A model generated the notes under the pieces. It made no database searches and was not told the DNA's origin. It saw only the letters and a list, made by a program, of their open reading frames with translations. From Macrostomum lignano (lineage: Eukaryota): a DNA stretch of 48,869 bases. The translations under genes were made by a program, and so were the position numbers. Where the stretch lies: positions 1 to 48,869 of the forward strand of contig NIVC01002681.1 of assembly GCA_002269645.1 (NCBI GenBank), given 5' to 3'. Positions 2,359 through 48,869 of this stretch are shown piece after piece; position 1 is the first letter of the stretch, and the number at the start of each line of letters is the position of its first letter.

Positions 2359-2507
2359 CTGCGTTGCGAAAGTTGAAAATTATTGATTGGATTGATTTAG
2401 TTCTCAAGCGTGTACTAAAAGTAGTGCTATGCAAAAACATTTTATTTTTTATCATTATTTTATTTAAGAAAATGCAAAGATTTTTGACTATTGGATGTAG
2501 GACCATT

Positions 2508-6561: not shown

Positions 6562-6643
6562 TAGCGTCGCACTATAAACCCAGAACATTATTTAGTGTCT
6601 CATGTAAACAATAATAAAGTCATACAAAGCAGAACAAACTAAC

Positions 6644-7492
6644 CATAGTTATTGTGTCGCCTCAAATCCTCCTTGCTAATGAACAGATCGTGATCCGTGT
6701 CGATGTCCCAGAATTTGCAATAGATAACATAAAAGTGTTCGTAGCTGAAAAAGTCTGTAACCTCATTAATATCGTCTTTAAGCTCTAACGAGGCTATAGT
6801 TGCTAACAATTTAGATCTGCGCAACTCCTGACAGGTGATTCTACCAGTCCAAGAGGCGTTCACTTCGTAGAATATTCTAGCAATAACTGTATTCACATAG
6901 CGACCGTGAAACTCGGGCGCCTCCTGTAGGAAGCTCAAGCCGGGATGCGAATCCACAATGTCCTGTACTAGTGGCAGAAAGTCGTCCGACACTAGGTGTT
7001 GCCTAGCGCCTCGGGTCAACAGGTGCACAAATCTGGACGAATCGTCGCGAAAATTTTTTGTTAACTCTCGTCGCAAAGTTAACAGTCGGTCTTTAGCAGC
7101 CGGTCGTTGTTCTGTGCCGCCAGCAGCTGAGAACAGCGGCTGCTTCCAGAACTTTGGATAGCCCATCGCTTTGGCAATGTCGGCCATCTGTGCCAGCGTC
7201 ACAGTTTGGCCTTGAATCTCATCTAAAGCCTGAACTAATCGACTATCATCAACCGGAGCGGCGGAGCGGCCGAAGAAACTCGGCCAGTATCGGGGAAGTA
7301 GAATCTGGGAATGTCCTGACCGCGCAGCGAGTCCGCCTCTTTCAATAGCGCCGTCACCACCGGGCCGGCTGGGGTTGACGCGGCGTCCTCAGACGGAGTA
7401 GCCGTCGCAGTTGGCGAAGAGGGGCCGGTTGGCGAGGTTGCCGAAGTTTGCGGCGAATTAGAAGCCTCCTTGGTAGTGGTGGAGTCGCCCGA
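6644..7492 (-). CDS. PPP2R3B: PP2A B'' subunit core exon with first EF-hand, one apparent frameshift near 7250-7290
   Basis: QDIPRFYFP, FWKQPLF, QDIVDSHPGLSFLQEAPEFHGRYVNTVIARIFY, FFSYEHFYVIYCKFWDIDTDHDLFI. Acceptor aaaacag at 7493-7494 (phase 0), donor gttagt at 6643. Confidence 0.93.
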
Positions 7493-15690: not shown

Positions 15691-16255
15691 TTAAGAACTG
15701 TGCAGAATCCTATTGAACGCATTGTAGCCGCTCTCCATGTCGAACACCATCTGTCGAGCCTGAGCTTCATCCAATTCATCCGACGCGCCTAGCCCAGCTA
15801 GCACGTCCAGCCACTCTTTCACCTTGGCTTTGCCCTCGAAATCAGTCGGCAGCATTGACATTCTATTCATAGTTTCCATCAGTTCGCGCAGATTCGGATC
15901 CAATTGATCCTTGGACAGCATATTCAATCGCAGATTGTCCATTATGGTGATGTACAGGGCCACAATATCAGCAATACAGCGACTAGTATTGCCTTTGTCA
16001 TCCTTAATAGTGATTGGTCGGTCCTCTTTAATCCGACTGATAGCGGCTGGACAGTTCATTCGGTAGCGGGCTACGAATGTCTCCAAATCGGGATATTCGT
16101 CGCATTGCACCTGCCTGAATGCTGCTTTGTACTGGACAATTAGCTTAGAACAGGCGGCTGTGTACTCTTTAGCCGGGATGCAATCTTTAATGTACATCTT
16201 CTCCAGATTTTGCAGGGTGTTTAGCACAGCGTACAGCTCGGCCAGGTTGTCGTAT
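15691..16255 (-). CDS. VPS28: ESCRT-I subunit VPS28, second coding exon
   Basis: [24 protein letters not shown]...[17 protein letters not shown]...[22 protein letters not shown]...[16 protein letters not shown]. ctcag acceptor at 16256-16257, TAA at 15691. Confidence 0.97.
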
Positions 16256-17985: not shown

Positions 17986-20026
17986 TTGATTACCAAATTT
18001 ACCAAATTTAATCAAAATGAAGTGCTTTATAGTTTTGATGCTGTCTCTTTACTTACTAACATTCTGCTGGAGTTTGCTATTAACCTTGCCACTGATACTG
18101 TATTCCAATATTTGAAACCAGATTTAGACAAAGAAACTTTCTGCAAACTCCTCACCTTTGCCACTAAAGGAATCTTCATGTTTAAGAATAAGCTTTACTG
18201 GAAGATTGATGGCTATGACATAGGGAGCCCTTTAGCCCCCACCTTGGCCAATCTTTGTCTGGCTCATTGGGAAGAGGAATGGATAAAGAGTGATATGGCC
18301 TACAAATTCTATAAGAGATATGTTGATAACTCTTTTTGTTTTCAATGAAGGGACTGACTATAGCCAATTCTTAGACATTTTGAACAGCACTTATCCCAAC
18401 ATAAAATTCACTGCTGAAAGAGATGGGAAATCTATACCTATTTTAGACATTCAGATTTTTGTTGAAAACAATTGTGTGTCTACCAAAGTTTAATGTAAAC
18501 CCACCTACACTGGTCTTCTGCTAAACTTCAATGCTCTGCCCAGCCTAATGGAAAGTGGGCCTACTGCGTGGTATGTCCCACTGGGCTTTTGAAATCTATA
18601 GCACTTGGACTAGTTTCCATGAAGAAATTTGCTTGATTAGCACCTATTTTTCCAAAACAACAACAACAACAACAGAGTACGCTGCCGGATCACAAAAGCA
18701 ACGTCAGTTGGCACGCTTCGAAGCCTGGGCGCGAACAAAGGCCGCATTGCCGGCAGAGTCCGGGGCGCCGGCGTCAGCCAGCAGACAGTCGACGTAGCGC
18801 CGTGTCCTCGCTTGTCCCCGCCGGTAGGGTGCCTGCAACGTAAGTAGCAGCACCTCCTGCACCGGCTCCGGACAGTAGGCCTCGGCGCGGATGACGTGGC
18901 CTGCCAGCTGGAGTCGCCGACGGCGCAGCAGATCGCTAGGACGGGCCAGGCCGGCGCGATGGTAGAGCGCCGTGTTGGTGACTCGCTCGTTGCCGATCTT
19001 GAAGGCGGCGCGCAGCAGGCCAGCGTGCGCCGCGTCGACTTGAGCCTCGAGCGAGTCTGTCAGCGTCCAGGTCTCGGCGTTGTATAACAGGACGGTTTCG
19101 ATCACCGCCTGGAACAGCGCCGCCCTCTGGCGGTCCGGTAGGGCCTCGGACTGCAGGACTGACCTTATAGAACGAAAGGCAGCCCAGGCAAGTCCTCGGC
19201 GACGCCACAGATCCTCGCGAACGTCGGGAACCAGACCGCCGAGGTAGACGAACTGCTGACATCTTGGAAGCTCACTCGCCTGTCCGTCAGCGCCTCGGCA
19301 GAAGATTGCAGCCTCGGTGTCGACCGGCACGCATAGCACGACGGTCTTCTGCGTGTTGACCACCAGGCCGACGCTCGCCGCAACGGCAACCAGCCTATCC
19401 AGCTGTCGTTGGGCGCCCTCGACGGTCGAGGACCAAAAACAATTACCTGAAATGATTCCTCAATTACCACATTAGGAAATTCATTGATGGTAAAGTTGGG
19501 AATCTGAACAATAGACAGAATAAGGAAGAACAGAAAGATCTGAGGACTAATTGCACCCATATCTCCATTCCTTTCTATGGGCCTACTTCTATTCATTTTA
19601 AAAAGAACCTCATCAGAGCGTTTAATAAGTATTTAAATGTGAAGCTCATGGTCACTTTCTGTTGCAAGAAAATTGGTCAATTTGTTTAGAATTTGAAATG
19701 TTGTATTTCTAGCTCCTTATAGGCAGGTGTCAATTACCAATTTCAATGTTCTGGTGACCAGAGTATCACCTACATAGGTTAAACTACCCAACATCTATAC
19801 ATAAGAAGTAAAGAACATAGGCAAAAGATGTCAGCCATGCATGACCACTTGATGATATGCACAGAATGCTATGACAGCCAAATAGATAAAAACTTTTTAC
19901 CATCTATACATGCTCAAATGAGTACAGACTGAAAGTGCTTGAGGTCCTATATATACATTGTGTAAACCAATCCTAAATAAGCAGCTTGCCAATAATGGTG
20001 CCAATGCCCTCCTTAGAGTATTCTAG
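17986..20026 (+). mobile_element. Degenerate Penelope-like retroelement (RT + GIY-YIG endonuclease), 5'-truncated and split by a LINE insertion
   Basis: RT motifs SFDAVSLLTNI, GSPLAPTLANL, RYVDN (catalytic YVDD mutated), LNSTYPNIKFT, KPTYTGLLLNF. After the insertion, GVNYQFQCSGD..TYIG*TTQHLYIRSKEH (19726-19818) and KPILNKQL. Multiple stops and frameshifts. Confidence 0.88.
18659..19432 (-). mobile_element. 5'-truncated RTE-type non-LTR retrotransposon with a (GTT)n tail and about 9-bp TSD
   Basis: End of RT and C-terminal domain: EGAQRQLDRLVAVAASVGLVVNTQKT, FVYLGG, AWAAF, LLYNAETWTLT, RRRRLQLAGHVIR. Intact frame, high GC, very short 3' UTR. TSD ccaaaacaa (18652-18660) / ccaaaaacaa (19433-19442). 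Confidence 0.9.
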
Positions 20027-20344
20027 GTATACACTTGTGCTCATCTCACTCTTTCTTTTTTTCTTTCTCTCTCTTTCTCTCTCTCTCTTTCCCTTTCTCC
20101 TTCTTTCTCTCCTCTCATTGCAACTATATAAGTGCTCCGTTGGACTGTACAATCTACTGTTAATTTAATATACATTTCTAACTTTTATTGACCTGTTTTT
20201 AGTTTTAACTAGCAATCTTCGCCCCCCGATGGGGGACATCTAGATAGAATCTCTGTTCTCTACAAGTATCAATAAGATAACCAAACAAACCCTTCACATA
20301 GTCAATAGAAAAACTGCTCAGATGAAGTGCAATGCAAAAAGAAA

Positions 20345-20690
20345 ACATCCTAAGACAGCAAGCATCCCCTCAGATAGCAAGCACCTCCAGATAGCAAGCA
20401 CCCCCCCAGATAGCAGGCACCCCCAGTTAGCAAGCACCCCCCAGATAGCAGGCACCCCCAGATAGCAGGCACATCCAGATAGCAGGCACCCCCAGAAAGC
20501 AAGCACCCCCAGATAGCAAGCACCCCCAGATAGCAGGCACCCCAGATAGCAGGCACCCCCAGATAGCAAGCACTTCCAGATAGCAAGCACCCCCAGATAG
20601 CAAGCACTTCCAGATAGCAAGCACCCCCAGATAGCAAGCACCCCCAGATAGCAGGCTCTCCCAGATAGCAAGCACCCCCAGATAGCAAGC
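20345..20690. repeat. 18-20-bp minisatellite (agcacccccagatagca) inside Helitron copy 1
   Basis: Tandem periodicity. Explains the GGACYLG-type ORFs. Confidence 0.92.
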
Positions 20691-22360
20691 GACATGGTGG
20701 CTTTTTACTGTTCGACATGGTGGCTCTTTAATGTTTGACATGGTGGCTCTTTAATGTTCGAAATGGTGGCTCTTTAATGTTTGACATAAAGTCACATACA
20801 TGTTTGACATGGTGGCTCTTTAATGTTTGACATAAAGTCACATACATGTTTGACATGGTGGCTCTTTAATGTTTTACATGGTGGCTCTTTAATGTTTGAC
20901 ATGGTGGTTCTTTAATGTTCGACATGGTGGTTATTTAATGTTTGACATGGTGGCTCTTTAATGTTCGACATGGTGGCCCTTTAATGTTCGACATGGTGGC
21001 TCTTTACTGTTAGACATGGTGGCTCTTTAATGTTCGATATGGTGGCACTTTAATGATTGACATCATGCCAGATTTATGTTTGACATGGTGGCTCTTTAAT
21101 GTTCGACATGGTGGCTCCTTTAGATTTGACATAATGGCTCTTTAATGTTTGACATGGTGGCTCTTTAATGTTCGATATGGTGGCTCTTTTATGTTTGACA
21201 TGGTGGCTCTTTAATGTTTCACATAATGGCTCTTTAATGTTTAACATGGTGGCTCTTTAATGTTCTTCATGATGTAGCTCTTTTATGTTACACATAGTGG
21301 CACTTTAACGTTCGACATGGTGGCTCTTTAATGTTTGACATAAAGTCACATATATGTTTGACATGGTGGCTCTTAAATGTTTGACATGGTGGCTCTTAAA
21401 TGTTCGACATGGTGGCTCTTAAATGTTTGACATGGTGGCTCTTAAATGTTTGACATGGTGGCTCTTTTATGTTCGACATGGTGGCTCTTTAATGTTTCAC
21501 ATGGTGGCTCTTTAATATTCTACATGGTGGCTCTTTTATGTTTGACATGGTGGCTCTTTAATGTTCTTCATGGTATAGCTCTTTTATGGTAGACATAGTG
21601 GCTCTTTAATGTTTGACAATGTGGCTCTTTAATGTTTGACATGGTGGCTCTTTAATGTTTGACATAAAGTCACATATATGTTTGACATGGTGGCTCTTAA
21701 ATGTTTGACATGGTGGCTCTTAAATGTTTGACATGGTGGCTCTTAAATGTTTGACATGATGGCTCTTAAATGTTTGACATGGTGGCTCTTAAATGTTTGA
21801 CATGGTGGCTCTTTTATGTTCGACATGGTGGCTCTTAAATGTTTGACATGGTGGCTCTTTTATGTTCGACATGGTGGCTCTTTAATGTTTGACATAAAGT
21901 CACATATATGTTTGACATGGTGCCTCTTGAATGTTCAACATGGTGGATCTCTTTTGTTCCACATGGTAACTCTTATGTTTGATACGGTGGCTTTTTTATG
22001 TCTGACATGTTGGCTCTTTAATGTTCGACATGGTGGCTCTTTAATGTTCGACATGGTCGCTCTTTAATGTTCAAAATGGTGGCTCTTTTATGTTCGACAT
22101 GGTGGCTCTTTAATGTTTGACTTGTTGGCTCCTAATTGTTTGACATAGTGGCTCTTTAATGTTCAAAATGGTGGCTCTTTAATGTTCGAAATGGTGGCTC
22201 TTTAATGTTGGAAATGGTGGCTCTTTTATGTTTGACATAGTGGGTCTTTTATGTTTGACATGGTGGGTCTTTTATGTTTGACATGGTGGCTCTTCTATGT
22301 TTGACATGGTAACTCTTTTATGTTCGATATGTTGGCTCTTCTATGTTTGACATTGCGCTT
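20690..22360. repeat. 23-bp satellite (gacatggtggctctttaatgtt[ct]) inside Helitron copy 1
   Basis: About 70 diverged tandem units with interspersed gacataaagtcacata variant units. Confidence 0.95.
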
Positions 22361-22490: not shown

Positions 22491-23104
22491 TTAATTGGAG
22501 AACATAAATTGTGGCCCTTATAATTCAATTCTTTCAGCAAGTCAATTGGAGTAAAAAGTTATGACATAATCAATTTCTCAGTCAGCCAGTATCAGTCTCA
22601 ATTTAAGTTAGCAATATGGTTACGCAATTTAAATCATGTCGTGTGTGCATTTCTTCGGCACTGTTTTCAACTTGTTGTGATGCAATCTTTATCAGAATTG
22701 GAATTCAGTCAGTCAGTTTTTTCTCTAGCATTCTTACAATGCATTTCAAGTCGAAAATTTGGCTTGACCTTTGCAAAAAAGCATGTTTTTCGAATATTTA
22801 ATCCCTTTAACATTGAGCAATTTCTTAGCCAAGATGCATGTACCGTCCCAGGAAAATTTCTGATCGAATGGTGCAAGTTTGAAGAAAATCGGTTGAGCCA
22901 ATTTTTCTGAAATCTATCGCATAGCTAGTTACAGACATTTCATTTTTAGTATATAGGACTAGCAATCTTCGCCCCCCGTTGGGGGACATCTGTATAGAAC
23001 CTCTGTTCTCTACAAGTAACAAAAAGATAGCCAAAAAAGGCCTTCACAAAGAAAACAGACAAAATACTCAAAGGAAGTGCAATGCAAAAAGAAATCATCC
23101 CAAG

Positions 23105-23375
23105 ACAGCAAGCATCCCCCAGATAGCAAGCATCTTCCAGATTACAAGCAACCCCCAGATAGCAAGCATCCCCCAGATAGCAAGCATCCCCCAGATAGCA
23201 AGCATCCCCCAGATAGCAAGCATCCGCCAGATAGCAAGCATCTTCCAGATTACAAGCAGCCCCCAGATAGCAAGCATCCCCCAGATAGCAAGCATCCCCC
23301 AGATAGCAAGCATCCGCCAGATAGCAAGCATCCCCTACATAGATAGCATCCCCAAATAGCAAGCATCCACCAGAC
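23105..23375. repeat. 19-bp minisatellite (agcaagcatcccccagat) inside Helitron copy 2
   Basis: Tandem periodicity. Explains the DSKHPP/IASIPQ ORFs. Confidence 0.92.
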
Positions 23376-23444
23376 AATAAGTAGCTAGTGCGATAATTTC
23401 CTTAGCATTATAGTGGCTCCTTTAAAATTCGCTTACTTTTATGT

Positions 23445-30124: not shown

Positions 30125-31219
30125 ATAAGTTAATAGTTTTTTGGTATTCTTTATAAAGATAAATTTTATAGTTTTTTGTTTGAAATTTAAGTAAATTTTA
30201 TTTTAATTTTATTACTGTTTAAAATTTAAAATTTATACTTTCAAAATAAATAAATATATCTCATGGCGATATTCCCATTTAACCTTATTTTTTCCATAAT
30301 TTATACAAATTAGATTAGCTAATAATTAAACATATCATAGTTTAAACCAAAGAATGCTTTTTTGCTAATGCTAGGAAATTCTAGCATATTATTGTTTTTC
30401 ACTAATAGTCTTAAACCTAATATACTAAGAATTTTTAAGCCCTCTAATAAACATTTTTTAATATTTAGTAGTTAAATATAGTAAATTATACCTCATAAGT
30501 AATAAAGTTAAAGTTTCAATTCTATTAAATAGCCTATGACTAAATAAAAATATTAGGGAGGCCTACTTATCTTTTAGATCTTTGACTATAAATTTTTATA
30601 TGAATTTAACTTTTACTTCATTTTAGTCATTTGGTAAACATACATGCGCAACTTCTGAAATTACGCTGGCCGTGCGACTTAGTTTTCGATAAAAAATGCG
30701 ACTTACCTATGAAAGAGCCAAGCAAAAACTTTAGGTAAACGGCAGGAGTAACTATGACCATATTTTTAAAGCTAAATGCCTCGCCAGCTAATTAGTGCTG
30801 CGTGCAGATTCCGCGTTTTTATAACAGCTAATCCGTATGTCATCTAGTGGCGGCATGAAGCAATTAGTAAATTGTCAGTACAGTGTAGTGAGCATACTAC
30901 AAAAGTCATGATTCATGAATGTCCAGAAGTAAGTGAAGTGAATACAGTGTGACCTATAGCTCAAGAACGATTTGCTAGACGATTTGGCATGGAAGATGAG
31001 AGCCCTGATTCAGATGGCTCATCAGATGCAGAATACGAATCCAGTAGAGATACAAGCTGTGAAAACCCACATATTTTTAAACCACTGAATTCTAATTCCC
31101 GGAACTATTTTTGCATAGATTCTAAATTTGAAGTCATGCTCAAACAAAAACTTGTTAACAGTTAGGAAAAAGGCAAAGATGGGAGTAATGCATGTTAAAC
31201 TAAGATTTGAGGCCTTTGC

Positions 31220-31885
31220 AAATTCTCTCCATTCCTCAATCTTCTCATCCTCTTTTTCTTTTCTCTCTCATCCCTTATCCCTTCTCTCTTTCCTCTCCTC
31301 TCCTATCTCTTCTGTCTCCTCTCTACATTCTTATCTCTCCTCTCGTCTCTCTCCATTCCACTCTACTCTACTCTCTCATCTTATCTTCCCTCTCGTCTCT
31401 CTCCACTCTACTCTCTCATTATCTCTCCTCTCTTTTCTACTCTCTCATCTCTCCTCTCTTCACTCTCCTCTCATCTCCTCTTTATCCTCTCTTCTCTCAT
31501 CTACTCTCTCCTCTTTCCTCTTTCCTCTCTTCTGATCTTATCCATCATCTTTTCTTTCCTCTTTCCTCTAATCTCCTCTTCTCTCTCATCTCTTTCCTCC
31601 CTCAGCTTTTCTCTCCTCTTCTATCTTTTCTCCCATCGCATCGCTCGCCTCTCCTCTGTTTGCTTATCTCTAATCTTCTATTCCCTCTACTTTGAAGTAA
31701 GAAAATATGCACATATTTTTGCTGAAGATAAGAGGAGAGAAGAGGGCATTGAGGAGAAAGGGTAGAGAGAAAGGGGGAGAAGAGAGGAGAGTAAAAATGA
31801 GAGGAGAGAGAAGAGGGAAAAGGGGGAGAGAGAGAAGAGGGGAGGCAAGGTAGAGAAGAAGAGAGAGATGAGAGTTGAAGAGACA
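31220..31885. repeat. CT-rich low-complexity tract (about 31220-31690) followed by a GA-rich tract (about 31720-31885)
   Basis: Composition. Explains the S/L-rich spurious ORFs. Confidence 0.9.
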
Positions 31886-31979: not shown

Positions 31980-32119
31980 CTCCAGAGTTTAAGAAATGAC
32001 GCGGGCTTCTGATTTCAAAGATCTTGTCTGTGGTTGAAGGCTTCTATTCTGTTTTTGCTCTCCTGCCACACTTGCACCTACTACCCCCTGATTGCCTCTG
32101 ATTGTGACTTACTTCCCTC

Positions 32120-33140
32120 TTATTGCGACTTAGTTGCTTCTTTTTGCGACTTACCTAATCCTTTTTGCGAATTACTTAATCCTTTTTGCGACTTACCTAA
32201 TCCTTTTGCGACTTACCTAACCCTTTTGCGACTTACCTAATCCTTTTTGCGACTTACTTAATCCTTTTTGCGACTTACTTAATCCTTTTGCGACTTACCT
32301 AACCCTTTGCGACTTACCTAACCCTTTGTGACTTACCTAATCCTTTTTGCGACTTACCTAATCCTTTTTGCGACTTACTTAATCCTTTTTGCGACTTACC
32401 TAATCCTTTTGCGACTTACCTAACCCTTTTGCGACTTACCTAACCCTTTGCGACTTACCTAACCCTTTGTGACTTACCTAATCCTTTTTGCGACTTACCT
32501 AATCCTTTTTGCAACTTACTTAATCCTTTTTGCGACTTACCTAATCCTTTTTGCGACTTACCTAACCCTTTGTGACTTAGCTAATCCTTTTTGCGATTTA
32601 CTTAATCCTTTTTGCGACTTACCTAATCCTTTTTGCGACTTACCTAACCCTTTGTGACTTAGCTAATCCTTTTTGCGACTTACCTAACCCTTTGTGACTT
32701 ACCTAATCCTTTTTGCGACTTACTTAATCCTTTTGCGACTTACCTAACCCTTTGTGACTTACCTAATCCTTTTTGCGACTTACCTAATCCTTTTTGCGAC
32801 TTACCTAATCCTTTTGCGACTTAGCTGATCCTTTTGCGACTTACCTAACCCTTTTGCGACTTACCTAACCCTTTTGCGACTTACCTAACCCTTTTGCGAC
32901 TTACCTAACCCTTTTGCGACTTAGCTGATCCTTTTGCGACTTACCTGATCCTTTTGCGACTTACCTGATTCTTTTTGCGACTTACCTAATCCTTTTTGCG
33001 ACTTACCTAATCCTTTTGCGACTTACCTAACCCTTTTGCGACTTACCTAATCCTTTTTGCGACTTACTTAATCCTTTTTGCGACTTACTTAATCCTTTTG
33101 CGACTTACCTGATCCTTTTTGCGACTTACCTGATTATTTT
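32120..33140. repeat. 20-22-bp minisatellite (gcgacttacctaatccttttt), about 47 copies
   Basis: Tandem periodicity. Explains the ATYLILF/CDLPNPF ORFs. Confidence 0.95.
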
Positions 33141-34279
33141 TACAACTTAGTTTGCTTCTTTTGCGAATTGTTTTTCTTTTGCTTCATTATTTTCCCTGAA
33201 CTGCTCTTTCTTTCGCTTTCCTCTTGCCTTTCTTGGTTCTTGTGTTTTTCTGTTTTTGGTTGACTCAATTTTGCGACTTACCCCTGGTCAGCCACGATTT
33301 ACGGTGGCCGGATCGGCCAGGTCGGCCAGCAGTTGCGCATGTATGTTTGGTAAATATTGTAAGGTTAATATTTATAAAATTGTATTTTATTTTGTCCAAC
33401 AAATATTATTTTAAAATTCAATATTTTTTTGCCAAATAAAGCCTAATAATATAGAAACAAAATAGCAAACTATAAAGTGGTATCTAATTATAATATTTGA
33501 ATAATATTTGTAAGTCAATCCATACTCCTTGCTTAAAATAATCTATTTGGTTATCTAAGTATATGTTTAAACTCATAGCTAAAAAGTTATCAATAAACAT
33601 AATTTTATTAATGTACTTATCAAACTAGTAGACTTACTAATACTATATTCATTATATATTGTTATAACTTTGAATACAATAAGTGATAAAAATGTTCAAT
33701 TCAAGTTTGGTTATAATTTTTTAAATGACCTCTATAAAAAAGCCTAAATAAACAAATTTGCTAATTAATAATTTTTTGTTCCATAAGTAAAAGACGCAGG
33801 GTATTAATATTAAGTTTTAATCAGAGAGATAGATAAGAGATTAGTGGAATAGTAGAATGATATATATAGTAAGGTTGAGGCATTGAGCAATTAAAGTTAA
33901 AGTGTAAGTTAAGCTAGGCAGATACAAAATGGAATGAAAGGGAAGCAAGTATAAATGTGCTGACTAACAATAAAAAATAGCAACATATATAATAAATAAA
34001 AAGTACTATTTTATGCTTGCATTAAAATTTATTAGATTGATTTTATTAGAAATGGATTTGATTAGAAAATATCAAACCTTAAAGAGTGAATAAGTTATTG
34101 AAATTTATATTTACAAAGCCAAGGTTTAAGTTGGCACTATAGCATTTTTAATCTGAAATAGAAAGTTGTTTGATTCCATTGCTAATTATTATCTTTATTA
34201 AGTTGGCAAAAAATTCCAAAATGAAAGTAAAAACTAGCTAGTCAATTAATATTTTTACCCATTTTTTCACCTCTCACAG

Positions 34280-34648: not shown

Positions 34649-37600
34649 ATGGCTGATCGCATGCAAGACCAATCTGTTCATACAGCTGTACGACCTGGAG
34701 CAGCCCCGGGCAAGGAAGCCAGCTCGGCTAAGCGAAATCCTAATATAGTGATGCGCCAGCCACCTGCCGAATCAGCAAATAGAAACTCGTCCGATTTAGA
34801 TGGCGACAATATTCAACCGCCTCAGCAGCCGCCGCCAGTTGCGCCGAAGCCTAAAGGCAAGAAAAAAGATAAGAAAGAGAAAGACAAAGACAGAGAGAAG
34901 AAAAAGAAAAAAGACAAGGATAAGGACTCTGCTTCATCGCCGCCAGTGCCACCGCCGCCAGTAGCGCAGCCACCACTGCAGAAAGAGCCGCCCCCGTCAG
35001 TGCAGCCAATGCCTTCCCAGGCGCCGCCGCCACAGACACAGCCTGCGCCACCACAGCCGAAACCGCGCTCTCACGCTTTGCCTCAGACGGTGCCGTCACC
35101 GCAGCAACTGCCTTCGCCTACTCTACCGCCTCCCCAACCAGCGCAGGCGCAGCAGCAGTTGCGATCTTCGTCTCTGCCTCGCAATCAACCGGTAAATGCG
35201 AGCGGATCCACCAGCGGAGCTGTTACCGCATCCGCTGCTCCTATGTTGCCTAATGCCGCAGTCGCTGCTGCAGCAAGCAAGCCGCAACAGTCTCAATCGT
35301 TCCATGGCACCACCGCTGCCAGCCAGCCATCCGCCAGCGCCGTACCAGTTGATAATTTCGGTCCTGGCTTAGTTGGCATTGTTAATCACGGCAATAGTTG
35401 CTACATGAATGCCATAGTGCAATGCATCTGCCATGTTGACCCGCTGGCGCACTACTTTGCGTCCGAGCTATACCTACAAGACCTGTACGCGGGCACAGTT
35501 GATAAAAAAGGCCGCCCCATCCCACACGAATATCGCACCGAACTCACCGAGGCATTCGCTCAGCTATTAAAATCGCTTTGGTTTGGCAACTATCAGCCTC
35601 AACTGTCTGACAATCTTCGTCAGATTGTTGCTCAGACTCGACCGGAACTGGCTCTCCGGGATCAACAGGACGCCCACGAGTTTATGCTGCTGCTCCTGGA
35701 TCATCTCCACGATGAGCTCAATGGCTATAAACGACAGCCTAAGGCTAAACAGAAGCCGCCGCTACCCCCTTCTGTCAATGCCGACAGTGCCACTTTTGCC
35801 GACGACCACGCTCAAAGAAATCGTTCCGTTGTCTACCAGTTGTTCTATGGTTACCAGCGCAATCGTCTGCAGTGTCCTGGATGCAGTTTCACCACCAGCA
35901 CTACGGAGCCTATCACATGCTTGTCTCTGCCAATTCCTGTAGGCACAACCCGAGCGCTCACTATCGTACTAGCTGACGAGCGCGGCCGTCAGACTCGATT
36001 CGGCTTGGAAGTTGCTGCTGATGGTTCTGTGCGCGAGCTTCGACGCAGTTTGACAACTCGCTGGCAGCTGGAGGATCCCCGTCATCTGCTCCTGTGCGAA
36101 CTTGGACCAAACGGATTCTGGCGCACATTCCGCGACACGGATTCCACGGCTCTGTTGTGCGAGCTGGGCGAAGCAGGCAGCCTCTATGCTATTCAACTGC
36201 CCAATCCAGTTATGGACGATGGCGACGATTCTGACTCGAGCGACTCAGAGCCCGTCTATCGACCGGACGGTATCGGTGCTGGCATCCGACCCCAGGAAGA
36301 GGACCTTAGCTACATTCGCATCGTGTCCGTTCACTGCGAGCGCACCCGCAGCGGAGAGCTGCGCCGCTTTACTGGCCCGCTGCACACTCAGCTCCAGGTA
36401 CACTGTACTCATGCCGAGCTTAAAGAGGCCCTACTAACCGAACTGGAAAGGGCTGGAGATCTGGCTCGAATTGCTAATAAACGCGATGTCTATGTTGAAC
36501 TGCGCCTTGTTGACGGACCTCCGCAGTCCTCTGTCCTCCAGCAGAATCAGCGTTCACCGCCTCTTGTTGGTCCCGCTGTAGACCGGGCATTGAACTTTAA
36601 TCTGACCGATGGCGGGCCGCGTCATCTTAAACTCACAGTTGTCTGGGGTGTCGCCGAACGACAGCGCTACGCTGCCGCTTACGTTGATGAAATTGAAGCC
36701 GACGCTAGTCTTCGGACGGCGGCTGCTCAACAGCAGGACAGGCCAGTCAGCTTGCAGGACTGTCTGGCCGAGTACATGCAGGGCTTCCCAGCTTCTTGGA
36801 TGTGCCCGAACTGTCGCCGAGTTCAACAAGCTGAACAAATCTCACGAATGTGGACTTGCCCTGATCTGTTGGTCATTCAATTGAAACGATTTCAACAGAC
36901 TGGAACGCGCAAATCCAAGGTTTCCGCTTTTGTCCAGTTTCCTATCGAATCGCTGGACATGTCCGAATACCTTGACGAGGAGAATCTTGGCCGCCTGAAT
37001 CCTTACTCGCTGTCTGCCACTGGCCGGCATCCGCAGTCAGCAACGCCAGCCGATTTCACCTACGATCTGGTTGGCGTAGTCAACCACACTGGCAGCCTAC
37101 AGTCTGGCCACTACACCGCCTTCACGTTGAGTCAATCTGATCATCAGTGGTGGCGATTCAGCGACGGCCAAGTTGAAGCTCTGTCCGACATGACCGCTGT
37201 TAGCTCTTCGGATGCCTATCTGCTCTTTTATCAGCGCAGAACTCTTCGGGCCATTTTTGTTAACAATGCTCACTGGAGTGTAGCGATCGCACAGCAGCAA
37301 ATGTACGAGCAACAGTTTGAGCAGCAGCCGCCTCAATCACAGCCGCTGCCATTCCAATCGCTCAATTTGCCACCGGACGCGTCTCTGCCGCGAGAAGATC
37401 TAGGCGACGGCGGCGAGGTAGCGCTCAGGCGATCCGCGCGTCCGCCACAGGCTACTCTACCTATCAACCTCATTCCTAATATGATGCCTGCACCTCCGCC
37501 TCAGCCACAGGCGCCAATTCTGTCCATTGACGAGACAGCCAGCGGCATGACTGTTAAGACTGGTCGAGCTCGGATTCACGTTCCAGATAGTAAGAAGCGT

Positions 37601-37693
37601 CAGGGCAAATGGGTGTGGCGCGGCGGCGTCAAAGTCTGGGACGGTCCGGATCCGCCGCCACCGCAGGAGCAGCCGGTGCCGCCGCCTGAATGA
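34649..37693 (+). CDS. USP31: Intronless ubiquitin-specific protease (USP31/USP43-like, C19 family), 1014 aa
   Basis: Cys box GIVNHGNSCYMNA (Cys251), QQDAHEF, CPGC/CPNC zinc finger, WTCPDLLVIQLKRF, His box NHTGSLQSGHYTAF (His821), FSD. The NHGN and QQ.....WT.PD motifs fit the USP31/43 group, but the exact orthologue is not resolved. Lys-rich and Pro-rich N-terminus. Confidence 0.92.
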   Translation: MADRMQDQSVHTAVRPGAAPGKEASSAKRNPNIVMRQPPAESANRNSSDLDGDNIQPPQQPPPVAPKPKGKKKDKKEKDKDREKKKKKDKDKDSASSPPVPPPPVAQPPLQKEPPPSVQPMPSQAPPPQTQPAPPQPKPRSHALPQTVPSPQQLPSPTLPPPQPAQAQQQLRSSSLPRNQPVNASGSTSGAVTASAAPMLPNAAVAAAASKPQQSQSFHGTTAASQPSASAVPVDNFGPGLVGIVNHGNSCYMNAIVQCICHVDPLAHYFASELYLQDLYAGTVDKKGRPIPHEYRTELTEAFAQLLKSLWFGNYQPQLSDNLRQIVAQTRPELALRDQQDAHEFMLLLLDHLHDELNGYKRQPKAKQKPPLPPSVNADSATFADDHAQRNRSVVYQLFYGYQRNRLQCPGCSFTTSTTEPITCLSLPIPVGTTRALTIVLADERGRQTRFGLEVAADGSVRELRRSLTTRWQLEDPRHLLLCELGPNGFWRTFRDTDSTALLCELGEAGSLYAIQLPNPVMDDGDDSDSSDSEPVYRPDGIGAGIRPQEEDLSYIRIVSVHCERTRSGELRRFTGPLHTQLQVHCTHAELKEALLTELERAGDLARIANKRDVYVELRLVDGPPQSSVLQQNQRSPPLVGPAVDRALNFNLTDGGPRHLKLTVVWGVAERQRYAAAYVDEIEADASLRTAAAQQQDRPVSLQDCLAEYMQGFPASWMCPNCRRVQQAEQISRMWTCPDLLVIQLKRFQQTGTRKSKVSAFVQFPIESLDMSEYLDEENLGRLNPYSLSATGRHPQSATPADFTYDLVGVVNHTGSLQSGHYTAFTLSQSDHQWWRFSDGQVEALSDMTAVSSSDAYLLFYQRRTLRAIFVNNAHWSVAIAQQQMYEQQFEQQPPQSQPLPFQSLNLPPDASLPREDLGDGGEVALRRSARPPQATLPINLIPNMMPAPPPQPQAPILSIDETASGMTVKTGRARIHVPDSKKRQGKWVWRGGVKVWDGPDPPPPQEQPVPPPE

Positions 37694-39246: not shown

Positions 39247-39878
39247 GTAAGTTATTAAAGTTAATGCTAAATTTTCGTTTTTCATTTACTATACTAATAG
39301 TATCGAGGTTTAAGGTATAGGCAATTTTTTAAGTTCATAGACTTAGAAATAGTTGTACGTGTATGTCCAAGTATCCTACTGTTTCGCAAGTAGTAGAAAG
39401 GGTGTCAAGTCTGACTGTTCTATTTAACTAGTTGGTTTTGGTTTTATTATTTGTATGAACGTAGTACGCGCGACACTTGTTGACGGAAATCTTTGAGTTT
39501 TCAGCAGTTATATATCGTAATTTCGAAGCATATTTTTCCAATTTTAACAGCCAATTTAAAATGAATGTGATTTAATACTTTCACTATGAAATCATTTTAA
39601 TTTTGTAATAATTTAAACACAGCGAGCTTGAAATTTGGAAGTTACGTAAAGAAGAACAATTCATATCGGATTGTACCTGCGTGTAAAACGATGTCGTCGT
39701 TAAAATTCAATAAAATAAACGTCTTTGGATACAGTTTTAACACAGAGTAGTCTGACTGACTCAAGCTGTAGCTTTTAAAGTGATAGATAATAAAACCAAA
39801 ATAAATTTAAAGTTAACACAGTCACCGCACAAGCTGAAACTCAAAGTTAGCCAATTCTGGCAAAACTGGATATTGCAG

Positions 39879-40066
39879 CATTCATTAAGTCGAACCGACC
39901 GTCTCAGTTCCCGGGCTTGAGCATCAAGTACAAGCGGGGCGCTGAGCCGGTCATCCGGCTGATGCAGGACGAGGCTGCCAGGTCTGCTGGCACCGGTGAG
40001 GAGTTCGGCATCGATCGATGGGACACTGACACTCTGGAGGAGTTCCTCCGGGAGCGACTGGTGTAG
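39879..40066 (+). CDS. SELENOF: SELENOF last coding exon
   Basis: AFIKSNRPSQFPGLSIKYKRGAEPVIRL...RWDTDTLEEFLRERLV*, the Sep15 thioredoxin-like C-terminus. TAG at 40064-40066. Confidence 0.95.
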
Positions 40067-42342: not shown

Positions 42343-45300
42343 CTACTTGAGATCCCAATAGTGGTGGCTGTAGTAGTCGGGCACTCTGATGTTGAACTCC
42401 TTCGCCTTATATTCCGGCTGCCGGTCCACAGGCCGAAGAAAGGCGGGTCGCGGTGTCGTACCGGCGCTGCAGAAATTGGCCAGCTCGATTTTACCGTCGA
42501 TTTCGGTCACACGGGAGGGCCCGATAGTCACCCGAAACTGGGAGACGCGAATCAGAGGATGGACTCGGTTGATGTAGCTCTCCGGCTCTTGAGGCAGTTG
42601 GTCCGGCAATTTCTCGCGAATGCTCACTGGTAGAATGTCTCTACAATCAGTGATGCAGGACTGCATAGCTTTTCTGGCTTCATGGAAGTCTTCTGGATCA
42701 CTCCGAGTGCACACTGAGCAGGAATTATCGAAGTCTCGCCAGCTCTGGTGTCCATCCAAAGTTCTTTGAGGTGCCTCGAACTCTCTATTGAAATCCGTCG
42801 TGGCCTTATCCACCAGCAGTTTTAGCTGTTGTTCGGTATTTTTATAGTCTGGAACTTCAAAGTCGCAGTTGATCTGGCTTGGCACTGCTTCCAGTTTGGC
42901 CTGAATTTCCGCTTTGATTGAGCGACACTCGGAATCGAATTGCCACCATTCTTGATCTGATTCTTTTGCGCTTACAGGCAGAAACTTACAGGCAGTGGCT
43001 GCGTCTGAGCTGAAGTCGATTGAACTTGAAGGCTCCGGTGCCTCAGTGAGGCTTTTGGCTGCCTCTGTCAGTGAACTGAACGGCTGTGGTGCCTCAGTGG
43101 GGCTTTTGGCTGCCTCTGTCAGTGAACTGATCGGCTGTGGTGCCTCAGTGGGGCTTTTGGCTGCCTCTGTCAGTGAACTGATCGGCTCCGGTGTCTCATG
43201 GAATTCGACAGCTGTTTCTGAGAATCTAGGATCATTGCTGATTCTCTCCTCAACATTAGTCAATGCGTTCAACTCCCAAGGAGTGAGGAGGCGCTCTTCA
43301 AGTTCTTTAGCTAGTGAAGCTTGAGTAGTCTTAGGATTCATTTGAGTCGGAGAAGACAAACTGAAAGCTTCGTTGTGACGTGTGTAAGCACTGGAAATGC
43401 TTGCAAACGGAGATGTAGCCTTTGTTGTGATGGAACCTTCGAAGCCAAGGTGCTCAGTATATCTGCCATTGTTTCGCATACCCTGTGTTTTCTCATCCAG
43501 TGTGATCTGCTTAGCTTGTATTGTATATTCCTGCAGATCGATTCCACCTGACTCGGCTATGAGGCAGATCTGCTTTAAGGACGCAACGCAAATATTTCTG
43601 AAGCTGATGGACGGAGCGGCAAGTGTTATGCCGAATTTCAGAGCAAGTTCCCTTTCTCGGAACTCATTGCCAGAAAGTTTGATTGGCTTTCTAGTTTTTA
43701 TTTTCAATACATTCCTGACACACTCGAAAGTTTTTGCATTGATGAATCGGACCAAATTCTCCTTGTCAAAACTTGGGCAGTCAATTTGAAGTTCGTCAAA
43801 CTGGCAGTCTTTTGCAGCTCCAAAATCTGGCAGTTCTGATTCTGAGCGAATAAGAAAAGAAGCTGCGGTGATTCCACTGTTCACCCGAATTCTGCCCGAT
43901 GAAGTGACCTGCAGGCTGGAATCCACTTTTAGGCTCCCGATGTGCAGCTCGCTAGCGCAGTCAATACGAAGTGACTTAATAAATGAGATCTCTCCATCAA
44001 TACTGACAACTCTTGCTGATACTGCCACTTCATCGCTAATCAGGCACTTGCGAATATGCACTTTGCTGGCAGCACTGATCCAAGATCTTTCACTCGTGTC
44101 TGCACCATTTATTTCCACTTCGCTGCCCTCTAGGTGGAAGCTTCTGCATTTGGAATTCTCTAATTTGAGCAACCCCTGCTTGCCAAATGACTTCACTGCA
44201 CCGTTAAGTTGGCAGTCCGATAGACTCAGTGATCCGGACACAAACAGACTGCACCTGTTGCTCACTCTGGCCCCGTGGATAAAACCATCATGACTGCGCA
44301 GTGTTAGGGATGCAGAGAACTCCGGGTTTTCCATTTCACAGCGCTCACAGTCGATGCTCACATTTTGATCGAACCTGCAAAGTTTCATTGCGTCAAATGT
44401 GTGACATTTCAACGTCACTTCTCCTTTGAATCCACAGCACTCGCTAATTGAAATTTTGTTGAATTCGTCGATTTTAAAAGTCAACTCTGTTGAAAATCCT
44501 TCAATCGTTGCAGTGGCCGAAGCTTTGGATCCTTTGGGGCAAATCCAGGCTGATCCAACTTTGGCAGTTTTAATTTCCAGCTTGTTCACTTTCAATACAA
44601 GCTCTTGCTGAATGTCTGTTTCACCAGCTAAGACAAAAGAGTCGCATGACAGTTCCGTGTGCTTTAGTGATGAAGTCAAAATTGACATATTTTCCACTGA
44701 GCCCTTTAGCGAATCAATAAATCCTGAGCTTATCTTACATTGTGTCGGCTCAGCGCTCAAAATCAGCATCGAAGTCTCAACATTTTCTAGTTTTATATCA
44801 TTACCGGTCAAAAGAGCTGTATTCTCAATCGTCACGTGACTCAACACAACCGTCTTGGGTCTCGAATTCACTTGAAGCTGCATTGTCCTGATGTTTTTTA
44901 TGTTCACAGCTGTTCCTTCAGCGCATGTTTCAGGGCCAGACATCACAAGCAATTCTTTTGTGAATCCTTCGCTTTCTTGTTTGGAATTTATACCGTCTAG
45001 ATCAAGCACCCTTGTCTGTACCTGCATTCGATCCTGCACCAAAACACCACAAACCATTGTAACATCTGCTTTTAGTAGAAGGCTTTCAATGAATTCACAC
45101 GCGGTCACCTGCGCAGTAGTTTCAACTTTCGCTTCAACCTTTTGAACACAACAGCCTTGAAGTTGGAGTTTTTTTTGTCTTAAGTTGGACCTCTGCATAT
45201 CGCAAACTTTTGATCTCGCAAATGTTTGAGGCGCTGACTTGAATTCTGGTAGCATCAGTGTCTGCAACGCGGACTTCGGCGCTCTGGATGCAGGCTGTAT

Positions 45301-48300
45301 CCCGAATGTTGCAGCCAGTCATTGTGAACTGAGCATCCGCTTGAATGGTACCGTTTTTGAAGACGCATTCCGTCAAGGCGATGTTCTTGCCAGCGAGTTC
45401 GACAGAGTCGATTCTCGATACGAGATTCAACAGCACTGCTGGTGCGGCCATGGTTTCTTTGGCGTGAATGAAGAGACTTGTCTGCAGTCCAAAAGTGCTT
45501 GTAATGCAGCAACGCCTGCACACGGCTGTTACCTGACCAATTTCTGAGTCACTGATTGCCAGAATGCCGTTACTTTGTACTGTCAGATTGTGCAGACTGC
45601 AGTTTGACTTGATTCGTACATCACCCGAAATTCTTTTGAAGACGACACTGTTAACGATTTCTGTTGTCGATACTGAGGCGAAAAGTGCATCAGTAATGTT
45701 TATCTCTTCCGATTTTACTGCGAGCAGCCGGACTCCCACGATTCCATTTGTCGTACCCGTGACTTCTAGAGTGCGTGAAAAACATTGCGCAACTCGAGCT
45801 GCTATCGAGACAGTCAGTTTCATATCCGACTGAGATTGACAGTCGGAAATGCACAGTCTACCCGAGTTCAGCCAACTCAGACCTACCGAGTTGAGATCAT
45901 GAATGTTGAGATAAGAATTTCCTATATCCACATGGAGACTTCCGACTAGGAGTTGTTTCAGTGTTGTATGACCCTTGGCGATGACGACTGTGCTCTTATT
46001 TGTAATGAGCCTTTCGACATTCACAGACGAATCAGCCAGTAGTTTGAAATGGTCCAGCTGACAATCGCTCACAGTAACATGACCCAAACTGGCAACATCA
46101 CAGCCTTCATCAATCATCAGCCTCTCTAAGATTGTGTTTCCTCTTGACAAGATCTTCAGGGACTTGCCGCTTGAGTCGGACATTCTCAGCATTCGGCAGG
46201 AGATTTCAATGTCCTTCTGGACTTCACACATTCTTACTGTAGCTCCCACTGAACAGCCACGAAGTTTCATCGAGCCCAGTAAGCTGGCAAACGCGTGCGC
46301 AGTTTCTGACCAGGCTACGAGGTCGCCAAAGACGCTAGATTTGGACAGAAGAAAACCACTGTAAGCATCTACATGCATTTTCTCTGTCTCTGTCTCGAAA
46401 AATTTTAACTGCTTTCCCTGGAATGCCAGTCTAGTGAATTTGTTTTGTTTTGACGTCAAATCTGAGCAGAAAGCGACGAATTCGTCACTCATCGATTGCT
46501 CAATGGATAATTCTCCTTCTTTAGGGCATATGAACCAAAGTTTGGAGAGCATAGTTTCACTTACTTTTGCTTTGAAGCTGCATAACACCAAAGTTTCAGT
46601 GACATAAACATTTGCAATTTCGAAGTTATTGCTCGTGCAGGTTGCTGTTCCTAGACAGGTCTTTGTTGAGCTACCTGCAATCTTCGTCATGTTACTAGAG
46701 CGAACTTCTAAATCGGTGACGCTCGAGTCAGTTATTGTAATATTTTCAGCTTTGACAATTTTAAGTGCAGCAGCTAATAAGTCGTCAATTTGAAGGTCGG
46801 AGCACGAAACAGTCAGGTGCTGTGCTTCTACCTGCTGAATGCTGATTTTCTCTTCTGCGGTACAGTGCAAGTCTTTAAGGAAACAAAACTCACCGATGCT
46901 AAAGTGTCGCTTAGTTTTTGCCAAGAACTTTTCAAACACGTGCGATGTTCTTACCAGCAACTCATCAGTGACGTTGCAATTTAGGTTAGTAAACGAGCAC
47001 TTTAGAATCTGGCAGGAGTCGCTCAATATTGTGCAGTTTTCTAACTTCGATGATCTAGCTTAATGCTGACAAAGCTATCAGATGCTATTAGATAGGTTTT
47101 AGGCGCAAATACAAGCTTTGCATCGAGTTCATTGGAAATAATTGCCTCCAAAATCTCTGTGCTTGTACTATTCACGATACTCGCTGATTCAGACAGTAAA
47201 CAAAGTCTCTCAGATGCTAAATTGCCCACTCGAGCATTCTTAGCGGTGATCCAAACCTCCGTCTCACCAAGGATCTCGTCAATGCCGAGGCTTTCCTCCG
47301 CGGCCATCAGCAAATTCCGTGCTGACCAGATTCCGTACGCTTCAATTTGAGCACTTCTTAGAGTTACAGAGGCTTCTTCAGATGTCAAGCTTCGAGTCTT
47401 CAAGAGTTTCTCCGCAAAAATGTGCACATCCCCAGTGCACACAAGCCATGTTGTTGGCTGATCGGACCAAAGCTGGGCACAGACGGATTTGATGAGGGCT
47501 CCATCCTTCACCGCCATGGAGCCATCAGACCGCCAGCTTTCACAATCATACATGACTTTCTGGGCCTCAATTCGAGTAGGTCCGATCAGGCACAACCACC
47601 GACTTCGTTCGAACAGTCCGTTTGATTTCAGCGGCGTCCAATCGCACTTGTAAAGCTTCTTCCAGTAATCCGATAAGTCTTCTTCTGTTTCAGAAAACCC
47701 TTCCTTGATGGAAGCAGTAAAGCCTGCAAGCAGACTAGCAACTGAGGAATTTCTCTGCAGACCAGAAGTCTCTGTCACCGTCTGAAGTACCATTTTAGAT
47801 GCAGCCGAAACAACCTGGGCACACCGATTATGATTTTCTCTGAAAGCCTGTGCAGCGTCTAGCACCATGATTTTCAGTGCGTCACACATCTGATTGCTTG
47901 AATCTGGCTGCAGTACCTTTTCTAAATCTTTGATTGAAGCCTTCAGCTCGTCAGACCCCGATTCGATATCTGTGCAAATTTGTTCGGCAAAGCCAAAGTG
48001 CAATATGCTTCTGGTGGATATCGTTGGGCTACACAGCTTTGAAAATATCGTGATGAGGGCACAGCTTTTCATTTTTAGCGAATTTTTGGCCTGAACGTTT
48101 GCTGGTGTGAATTTGCTTGCATCATCGCCATCGTCGCGTTTACACAAGTGCATTAGCACTTTTCCGTTAAGTATGACATCTTCTGCACTCAGCTGACTTT
48201 GGTTGTAAATAAGCTTTGATGCTGAGATGGAGAGCTTCGAACGACATTTTAAGCTTCCAACGACAAGAGCATTTTCCGCTTCGCAAGCAATGGATCCCGT

Positions 48301-48869
48301 GTCTTGTATAGAAGCCAGATTATCAATAAATTTACTTATCAGGCGTAAGGTCTTGCAGAATGTGATTTTGCTTCCAGGTCAAGTGAAGCGGATTTATCTG
48401 CATGAATCTCTACAGCATTGATGTTTCGCATTTCGAAGGCTGATTTTGCTATGAGTTCCTGAGCACAGATTCTCACTTCAGCAGTGCTTACTTCATCGTA
48501 GCTGCCCACTAAGGAATCCTCAAGCACAACGCCATACGGACATTCTACAGTCGTGTCTTCAAAAATCAACCTATCAACTTTTCTTACTAGCAGTCGCGCT
48601 TGATTCAGCTCGAGTTTGCTGGACTCCCAGATTAACTTCTTGACAGACTGGACCACCATCAGCTCTGATACAAAAGTTCTCGCTGAGTTCATTGCTAGCA
48701 GCTCACCGTTATCAGAATTCACTAGAAGCGTTCCAACTTTAATCTCACAATTTGGGTGCATTTTCATCTCTCAGTTTTCAAATTCAATCAGCAGCAGGGT
48801 GGCTTTTGTTCTTCGAACTGAGTGATTTCACCACTTATTTTAACGGTTTTTGCGTTCAATATTAGTTTG
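42343..48869 (-). CDS. Giant intronless protein (>2100 aa, 5' end beyond the window), predicted beta-solenoid body plus distinct C-terminal domain; at least 3 apparent single-base frameshifts
   Basis: The ORFs 48339-48767, 47041-48159 (frame open from about 48376), 45134-47026 (open from about 47050) and 42343-45267 abut or overlap and join by single indels in short homopolymers. Continuous alternating hydrophobic/polar S,C,I,V,L,K,T-rich pattern. No splice signals are needed. Confidence 0.75.
43022..43195. repeat. 51-bp coding tandem repeat (17 aa, PQPISSLTEAAKSPTEA), about 3.3 copies
   Basis: Units start at 43037, 43088, 43139 and 43190. Confidence 0.92.

Follow-up and report, generated by a model that had tools for sequence, protein, structure and literature searches.

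To our knowledge, giant β-solenoid proteins are mainly surface devices of bacteria and phages. The filamentous haemagglutinin (FHA) repeat found among them spans about 19–20 residues. Bactofilins, which share the β-solenoid fold, are far smaller bacterial proteins. On the eukaryotic side, the bridge-like lipid-transfer proteins (VPS13/ATG2/BLTP) are giant, cytosolic and made of amphipathic β-strands with helical inserts. Here we describe Mlig022560, a gene that the flatworm Macrostomum lignano carries on the minus strand of contig NIVC01002681.1 (assembly GCA_002269645.1). The contig was analysed over its entire length of 48,869 bp, hereafter the window. Positions 42343–48869 are coding throughout and carry residues 966–3139 of a 3,139-residue protein, in which a rung of about 19 residues, comparable to the FHA repeat, recurs in places; the gene's 5′ end lies beyond the contig break.

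We read Mlig022560 as a single-exon gene encoding a lineage-restricted, intracellular, rod-like scaffold of β-repeats, and give this reading a probability of about 0.5. If it is true, a native, intracellular animal β-solenoid with no homologues would constitute a new structural family, and the locus would be a clean example of a very large lineage-restricted gene. As it stands, the split of the product into ‘hypothetical’ fragments of 953 and 1,318 aa would hide a 3,139-aa protein from screens. M. lignano is a transgenic model amenable to RNA interference, which makes the question directly testable.

A single-exon gene present on three contigs

Four stop-free stretches follow one another on the minus strand of the window, at 42346–45318 (991 codons), 45137–47059 (641), 47044–48378 (445) and 48342–48770 (143), and a further 26 open codons reach the contig end. 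On one strand and at 45% GC, stretches of 991, 641, 445 and 143 codons do not arise by chance. The peptides AENITITDSSVTDLEVRSS and LHNLTVQSNGILAISDSEIG are both encoded within the 641-codon stretch.

Two sister contigs of the same assembly, NIVC01000490.1 (L001) and NIVC01002682.1 (L002), carry the locus as well and share the C-terminus ...HHYWDLK, followed by the stop. In L001 a single uninterrupted stop-free stretch of 3,180 codons yields 3,139 aa when counted from its first ATG, a 9.4-kb open reading frame (ORF). In L002, 2,110 codons are open, beginning at the contig end. The initial annotation of the window, which named no strand, had described more than 6.5 kb of continuous, intronless coding sequence. 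The whole interval is coding indeed and the L001 frame runs through it without interruption; the word ‘continuous’ holds for L001 but not for the window contig, where four 1-bp indels and a TGA intervene. The frameshift repair and 5′ extension that it had suggested were carried out through L001 and gave the 3,139-aa ORF.

Used as a protein query, the 991-aa piece has PAA55970.1 as its sole match (P0001; ‘hypothetical protein BOX15_Mlig022560g1’, 953 aa). A cluster mate of this entry, P0002 (PAA55961.1/PAA82174.1; g3, ‘partial’, 1,318 aa), is found on two further contigs. Public annotation thus holds only the last 1,318 aa (g3) or 953 aa (g1) of the ORF, and the called-genes table for L001 and L002 assigns no model to the 5′ 5.4 kb of the coding sequence (CDS; L001 4589–10000). 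Both PAA55970.1 and P0002 are also short of one 17-aa SSLTEAAKSPTEAPQP unit (51 nt) that all three genomic copies encode, either because transcript and genome differ in repeat number or because an artefact of alignment was recorded as a gap or intron.

The M. lignano annotation pipeline is transcript-based, combining StringTie, TACO, TBONE and TransDecoder (PMC5730564). That g1 and g3 were modelled at all thus implies that at least the 3′ 4 kb are transcribed. The identifier ‘Mlig022560’ is absent from the searchable literature text and supplements, where no expression data were found. Altogether, Mlig022560 is a real, single-exon and under-annotated gene.

Frame breaks in the window copy

Along 16.5 kb the window shares 99.93% identity with L001, from which it is separated by 2 mismatches and 7 gap openings. 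Relative to L001, its reading frame is interrupted by four indels of 1 bp each and by the insertion of a TGA. Three of the indels are deletions, located in a C-run at 48799, at 48380 and, outside any homopolymer, at 47053; the fourth is an insertion in an A-run at 45176. L002 reads as L001 wherever the two overlap, including the three lesion sites within its reach; in 6.3 kb they differ by one mismatch and one indel. With so few differences, a ratio of non-synonymous to synonymous substitution rates between the copies is impossible to obtain.

L001 has a defect of its own. It misses one G at the equivalent of window position 37374 (L001 ~18976), which frameshifts its copy of a conserved 1,014-aa UCH/USP deubiquitinase; the window copy of that gene is intact. 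The assembly was produced with Canu from PacBio reads, polished with Pilon, and contains 180 Mb of redundant blocks (PMC5730564). Single-base indels on both redundant contigs, with indels outnumbering substitutions, point to consensus errors. The four frameshifts and the TGA are contig-specific and, judging from these alignments, most likely errors of the long-read consensus that persist in a redundant copy of the locus.

The window copy could instead be a genuine pseudogene, in which a duplicate or homeologue of the intact NIVC01000490.1 copy is decaying. Its 6.5 kb of CDS hold five disruptive lesions, whereas 10 kb of flank hold two indels, and M. lignano DV1 has extra chromosome copies besides the redundant blocks (PMC5730564). 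Neither the TGA insertion at 48771–48773 nor the deletion at 47053 is a classic homopolymer error, which also counts against our own reading of the locus. However, the proportion of substitutions to gap openings given above is the pattern left by errors in a long-read consensus rather than by neutral decay; the sister contig is frameshifted in a conserved gene in its turn; and L002 sides with L001 at every lesion that it reaches. We find decay rather unlikely.

Short introns at the frame changes were also considered and rejected: the junctions have no intron signals, the sister contig reads through them, and the two sequences differ there by indels of a single base. The frameshifts behind the initial annotation belong to one redundant contig, which calls for caution. 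Outside the giant gene, the identity between window 38358–33346 and L002 10390–15419 falls from 99.7% to 94.7% downstream of ~38360, where L001 keeps its 99.9%. L002 may thus represent a separate homeologue or haplotype to which a near-identical copy of the gene is joined, or else the giant-gene region may have been recently homogenised.

No relatives among sampled proteins

Scans of all 3,139 aa against Pfam and NCBIfam gave no match above threshold. The same is true of PHROGs, where the best match had an E-value of 0.12. PDB sequences matched nowhere, residues 2930–3139 included, and a profile of the repeat unit described below found nothing in the PDB either. A tblastn search of phage (50,697 records) and plasmid collections returned nothing.

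For a large collection of ~15 billion predicted proteins, a word-indexed search was run over 5.8 billion clusters; queried with residues 1–1204, ~1569–2209 and ~2150–3139, it retrieved the protein itself only. For residues 1205–1568 the comparison covered the curated libraries, the sequences of the PDB, and the collections from phages and plasmids. The last 991 residues were also taken through a full HMMER scan of 1.84 billion representatives, which listed only the protein itself, P0003 and P0004. We rejected the latter two as relatives: they are artefacts, matching the 17-aa tandem repeat or low-complexity repeats. The Pfam bactofilin model PF04519 aligns with residues 2586–2637 below threshold, at 12.8–13 bits (cut-off 27.9; E 0.13–0.15).

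No family, eukaryotic or otherwise, is therefore recognised in the protein, as the initial annotation had noted for eukaryotic ones, and its guess of a lineage-specific sequence agrees with large-collection searches that return nothing else. A relationship to FhaB/CdiA or to phage tail fibres, of which the architecture had reminded it, is not borne out by Pfam, NCBIfam, PHROGs or tblastn, all of them empty. By these comparisons, the Mlig022560 protein appears effectively lineage-restricted, an ‘orphan’ in the sense of having no relative among the sampled sequences.

An amphipathic body with degenerate repeats

Hydrophobicity along the protein is anticorrelated between adjacent residues (lag 1, z=−7.6) and positively correlated two residues apart (lag 2, z=+3.4) and again at a lag of 19 (z=+2.7). 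The first two values agree with the long run of short amphipathic strands originally described from the window. Among hydrophobic residues, a lag of 19 and one of 13 each give a correlation with z of ~3. The β-type hydrophobic moment exceeds the α-type one in nearly every 50-residue block; the α-type moment (100 degrees) is larger at residues 1251–1350 and in three other blocks, the further exceptions being the linker rich in Pro and a portion of the C-terminus. The first of them sits where a helical insert had been placed (about 47650–48000), a claim that stands insofar as a crude hydrophobic-moment profile is α-like there.

Internal repeats were found by tile-versus-tile phmmer followed by iterative hidden Markov models (HMMs); a self-BLAST dot-plot showed none. 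The unit is degenerate, about 60 residues long, made of three rungs and often terminated by S-x-G-h-x-h-SDCQ. Seven copies were detected, at residues 4–57, 1648–1690, 1843–1902, 1925–1976, 2459–2518, 2570–2627 and 2650–2670, against one copy, and once two, in each of 20 shuffled controls. The copies are 15–29% identical to one another. At such identities the duplications are old, yet all 3,139 codons are still open, which we read as a sign of long-term constraint; the pattern argues for long-term selection on the ORF.

Cysteines are spaced in a similar manner. Successive cysteines lie 18–21 residues apart in 19 cases, where 7.8 ± 2.7 are expected. One shuffle in 5,000 attains this count; when all bins are scanned, 1.6% of them do.

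Segments C and D were modelled with AlphaFold2 in single-sequence mode. The best part is a stretch of 170 aa, residues 2525–2694, where the predicted local distance difference test (pLDDT) score reaches 70–83 and strands begin every 18–19 residues. Its sequence follows the stackable pattern x-h-x-h-x4-h-x-h-x-G. When the models were compared with the PDB by Foldseek, the lists of targets, none of them significant, consisted mostly of parallel β-helices: tail fibres, tailspikes, polygalacturonase, left-handed β-helix (LbH) enzymes, HMW1, HxuA, Hap and EspC. The structural check proposed with the initial annotation thus produced a confident stretch but no significant fold match.

Start, sorting signals and composition

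The full-length N-terminus, read from L001, is MSMKMNECIRIAASRVSVADRSQ... and is polar. At the N-terminus of the intact 3,139-aa ORF there is no signal peptide and no hydrophobic leader. The full protein has no transmembrane segment either, the highest 19-residue Kyte–Doolittle mean being 1.7, and its N-glycosylation sequons are not enriched (17, with 24 expected). Its composition includes 10.9% Ser, 9.8% Leu, 4.7% Gly, 3.4% Cys (108 cysteines) and 2.3% Pro. The description of the sequence as unusually Cys-rich was overstated, since 3.4% is somewhat above the level typical of animal proteins.

A TTTCAG acceptor at L001 4517–4522, codon-aligned with the ORF and 66 nt upstream of the ATG (L001 4589), fits the M. 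lignano trans-splice motif [T/C]TNCAG. The spliced leader of this species has 35 nt and ends in ATG (PMC8629364). Were this leader-terminal ATG used in frame, translation could start 23 residues further upstream (MSPERWSCQVKVDKQSKELFVLI...); the extension is likewise not hydrophobic. An upstream signal-peptide exon was sought, and the one candidate, at L001 3434–3541, was rejected: it is weak, with a non-consensus donor, and we treat it as a chance occurrence.

A putative intracellular rod

We propose that rungs of ~18–21 residues are grouped in units of ~60 residues, with cysteines at recurring positions. Two helix-like inserts interrupt this body, which is followed by a tandem linker rich in Pro and then by some 210 aa of C-terminal sequence. 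The whole would fold as a long, irregular β-solenoid-like rod. At ~19 residues and 0.48 nm per rung, some 2,400 body residues would make a rod about 60 nm long. Such a rod may serve as an intracellular structural scaffold or filament component in some specialised flatworm cell, as suggested by its lack of sorting signals and of sequon enrichment, the cysteines recurring at rung positions, a repeat that begins at residue 4 and the elongated repeat body.

Several results weigh against this reading. The AlphaFold2 models are weak overall: mean pLDDT is 37.8 in segment C and 41.3 in segment D. Even in the confident stretch, the 16–17-residue strands assigned by DSSP could also be antiparallel hairpins. 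Foldseek found no significant match in the PDB (E>1, template modelling (TM) scores ≤0.17) and nothing significant in BFVD (TM ≤0.19, root-mean-square deviation 13–51 Å). Windowed Fourier and spectral analysis detected no common period along the protein, and an HMM of the 19-residue rung did not spread beyond its seeds. The large-collection search covered residues 1–1204 and ~1569–3139, and the TTTCAG acceptor 66 nt before the ATG leaves room for an upstream exon encoding a signal peptide.

The β-solenoid-like body of the initial annotation is made plausible, then, by the spacing of cysteines, the lag-19 signal and one modelled stretch, but not by overall model confidence, fold matching or a global period. 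A solenoid agrees with several signals that are weak but independent, and we lean slightly towards a β-solenoid fold for the body.

The main alternative is a body that is β-rich without being a solenoid. It could take the form of a long array of very divergent β-sandwiches of ~80–115 aa each, or of an antiparallel meander or groove, such as the repeating groove of the lipid-transfer proteins VPS13/BLTP. The repeat units are spaced 80–118 residues apart (1843/1925, 2459/2570/2650), and the strands of the confident stretch are unusually long; a missing short global period and a missing signal peptide, the latter shared with BLTPs, would be natural here too. However, with no significant Pfam match, no Chorein_N, VPS13, Apt1 or Ig/FN3/cadherin-type domain is detected. 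The positive correlations of hydrophobic residues and cysteines at lags 18–21 are better suited to parallel stacking, and the Foldseek lists, though without a significant entry, are dominated by parallel β-helices rather than sandwiches or meanders. We estimate such an architecture to be appreciably less probable than a solenoid.

Could the putative rod be exported? A filament, adhesin or toxin carrier that is secreted or displayed on the surface, in the manner of FhaB/CdiA or of a phage tail fibre, as initially suggested, would comprise a β-helical stalk, a linker and a C-terminal effector. The layout of Mlig022560 superficially recalls that of polymorphic toxins, with its strand-rich body, the Pro-rich linker at 43021–43198 and a distinct C-terminus of ~210 aa, and HMW1, HxuA, Hap, EspC and tail fibres do appear in the non-significant Foldseek lists. 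Yet the intact ORF has neither signal peptide nor transmembrane segment, and export would need an undetected upstream exon or an unconventional route. Pfam, NCBIfam and PHROGs yield nothing significant, leaving the two-partner secretion (TPS) domain, FHA repeats, pretoxin motif and toxin domains unmatched; phages and plasmids are empty by tblastn. The 108 cysteines, the unenriched sequons and fold matches with TM no higher than 0.19 are further points against it. We consider this role improbable.

The intracellular scaffold remains the reading that we prefer. Its most complete version, a cytoplasmic β-solenoid rod of 3,139 residues with cysteine ladders, encoded by a native and long-maintained gene and founding a new protein family with no sampled relatives, is in all its parts together unlikely. 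The putative rod could be a new kind of intracellular filament or a component of hard structures in flatworms, for example in sperm, stylet or anchor cells.

Genomic neighbourhood and origin

Mlig022560 lies among host genes in an arrangement kept on three contigs. SELENOF adjoins it, as initially reported, in the form of a Sep15/SelM exon on the plus strand (Table 1). An AG acceptor precedes this exon, which is convergent with Mlig022560 and ~2.3 kb from its stop. A scan of the window with Rfam gave no family at the gathering score, thus no call of a selenocysteine insertion sequence (SECIS).

The initial annotation considered horizontal acquisition. Capture from a bacterium, a phage or a giant virus, with later domestication, could explain why an intronless frame stands beside intron-bearing neighbours, with a GC content at third codon positions (GC3) of 0.46 against 0.52–0.57, and with a β-helix-like character that is commoner in bacterial and phage proteins. 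But no prokaryotic or viral similarity was found in ~15 billion sequences, PHROGs or NCBIfam. The adjoining USP gene is also a single ORF of 1,014 codons, so intronlessness is not exceptional here. Host synteny is conserved on the three contigs, a trans-splice-type acceptor stands upstream of the ORF, the cysteine content differs from that of bacterial β-helix adhesins, and the GC3 difference is mild. Synteny, acceptor and composition together make a horizontal origin very improbable, and a native gene is what we retain.

An origin from a transposon or virus was examined separately and rejected: no element genes lie next to Mlig022560, and on three contigs it is flanked by conserved host genes. 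Elsewhere in the window, ORFs at 17986–18348 (+) and 18704–19596 (−) resemble, by eye, fragments of reverse transcriptases or retroelements; this is unconfirmed, with no Pfam match at E≤0.001. Long simple or tandem repeat arrays occupy window positions ~32100–33170, 2219–3218, 20318–20718, 22946–23377 and 31128–31695. The array at ~32.1–33.2 kb aligns with itself at many offsets with 87–90% identity; the others show as repetitive pseudo-ORFs on both strands, which fits the repeat-rich genome of M. lignano.

Table 1 Features of Mlig022560 and neighbouring genes in the 48,869-bp window.
Feature	Position	Strand	Remarks
Stop codon of Mlig022560	42343..42345	-	C-terminus shared with L001 and L002
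CDS segment D, residues ~2197-3139	42346..45176	-	annotated as PAA55970.1; upstream end is a +1 insertion, A8 versus A7 in sister contigs
CDS segment C, residues ~1571-2196	45177..47053	-	strand-rich body; upstream end is a 1-bp deletion; AlphaFold2 gives mostly short strands at low confidence
CDS segment B, residues ~1128-1570	47054..48380	-	upstream end is a 1-bp deletion at 48380
CDS segment A, residues ~998-1127	48381..48770	-	from comparison with L001
3-bp TGA insertion, an in-frame stop	48771..48773	-	absent in L001
5′-most CDS on the contig, from residue 966	48774..48869	-	1-bp deletion in C-run at 48799; cut by contig end
α-Helix-like insert, residues 1251-1350	47713..48012	-	from hydrophobic moment only
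Best-modelled stretch, residues 2525-2694	43681..44190	-	pLDDT 70-83; overlaps the sub-threshold bactofilin match
Degenerate ~60-aa repeat unit, residues 1843-1902	46058..46237	-	iterative HMM
Other repeat copies	46694-46822, 45836-45991, 44209-44388, 43882-44055, 43753-43815	-	iterative HMM; residues 4-57 lie outside the window
51-nt tandem repeat, 3.5 copies	43021..43198	-	Pro-rich unit (I/F)SSLTEAAKSPTEAPQP; within the low-complexity linker
Low-complexity linker, residues ~2790-2929	42976-43395	-	holds the (I/F)SSLTEAAKSPTEAPQP repeat
C-terminal non-repeat region, ~210 aa, residues 2930-3139	42346..42975	-	low-confidence helices; no family match
Sep15/SelM (SELENOF-type), last coding exon	39851-40066	+	Sep15/SelM redox domain, E 1e-13
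UCH/USP deubiquitinase gene	34649-37693	+	single 1,014-codon ORF
VPS28	15691-16227	-	neighbouring host gene
PP2A B′′ EF-hand exon	6639-7202	-	neighbouring host gene

Comparison with known systems

At every test of membership, the analogies with bacterial systems, be it FhaB/CdiA, the tail fibre or the bactofilin, fail. FhaB, HMW1 and CdiA resemble the Mlig022560 protein in being very long single polypeptides of short amphipathic strands and in having a distinct C-terminal region beyond a linker; HMW1 and HxuA are among the non-significant fold matches. Unlike them, the Mlig022560 protein is eukaryotic, set in host synteny, with 3.4% Cys, low Gly and Asn, and irregular rungs. The N-terminus read from L001 lacks the signal peptide of FhaB/CdiA, and Pfam and NCBIfam detect none of their TPS domain (Haemagg_act/TIGR01901) in the 3,139 aa. 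FHA repeats (Fil_haemagg/TIGR01731) have no match at E≤1 in either library, the 19-residue rung pattern being only local. As for the pretoxin and toxin domains, residues 2930–3139 match no Pfam family or PDB sequence, and the downstream neighbour is the convergent SELENOF instead of an immunity gene.

Autotransporter passengers and phage tailspikes provide the top non-significant Foldseek targets of both models, namely Hap, EspC, the tail fibre of phage 7-7-1, the AP22 tailspike and polygalacturonase. These matches have E-values of 1.7–10 and TM scores of at most 0.17, and there is no match to a translocator, a tail-fibre family or a PHROG, nor to a phage by tblastn.

Bactofilins are cytoplasmic β-solenoid polymers devoid of sorting signals; the Mlig022560 protein likewise lacks such signals and is putatively cytoplasmic, and its weak bactofilin match at residues 2586–2637 falls in the best-modelled stretch. 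However, the PF04519 model has 98 positions, the Mlig022560 product is an animal protein of 3,139 aa, and 13 bits are far below the cut-off of 27.9.

Among eukaryotic proteins, VPS13/ATG2/BLTP are likewise giant, amphipathic-stranded and equipped with helical inserts. No Pfam domain of that family (Chorein_N, VPS13, Apt1) is detected in the Mlig022560 protein and, unlike the VPS13/BLTP groove, its lag-19 and cysteine-ladder signals suggest rungs stacked on one another.

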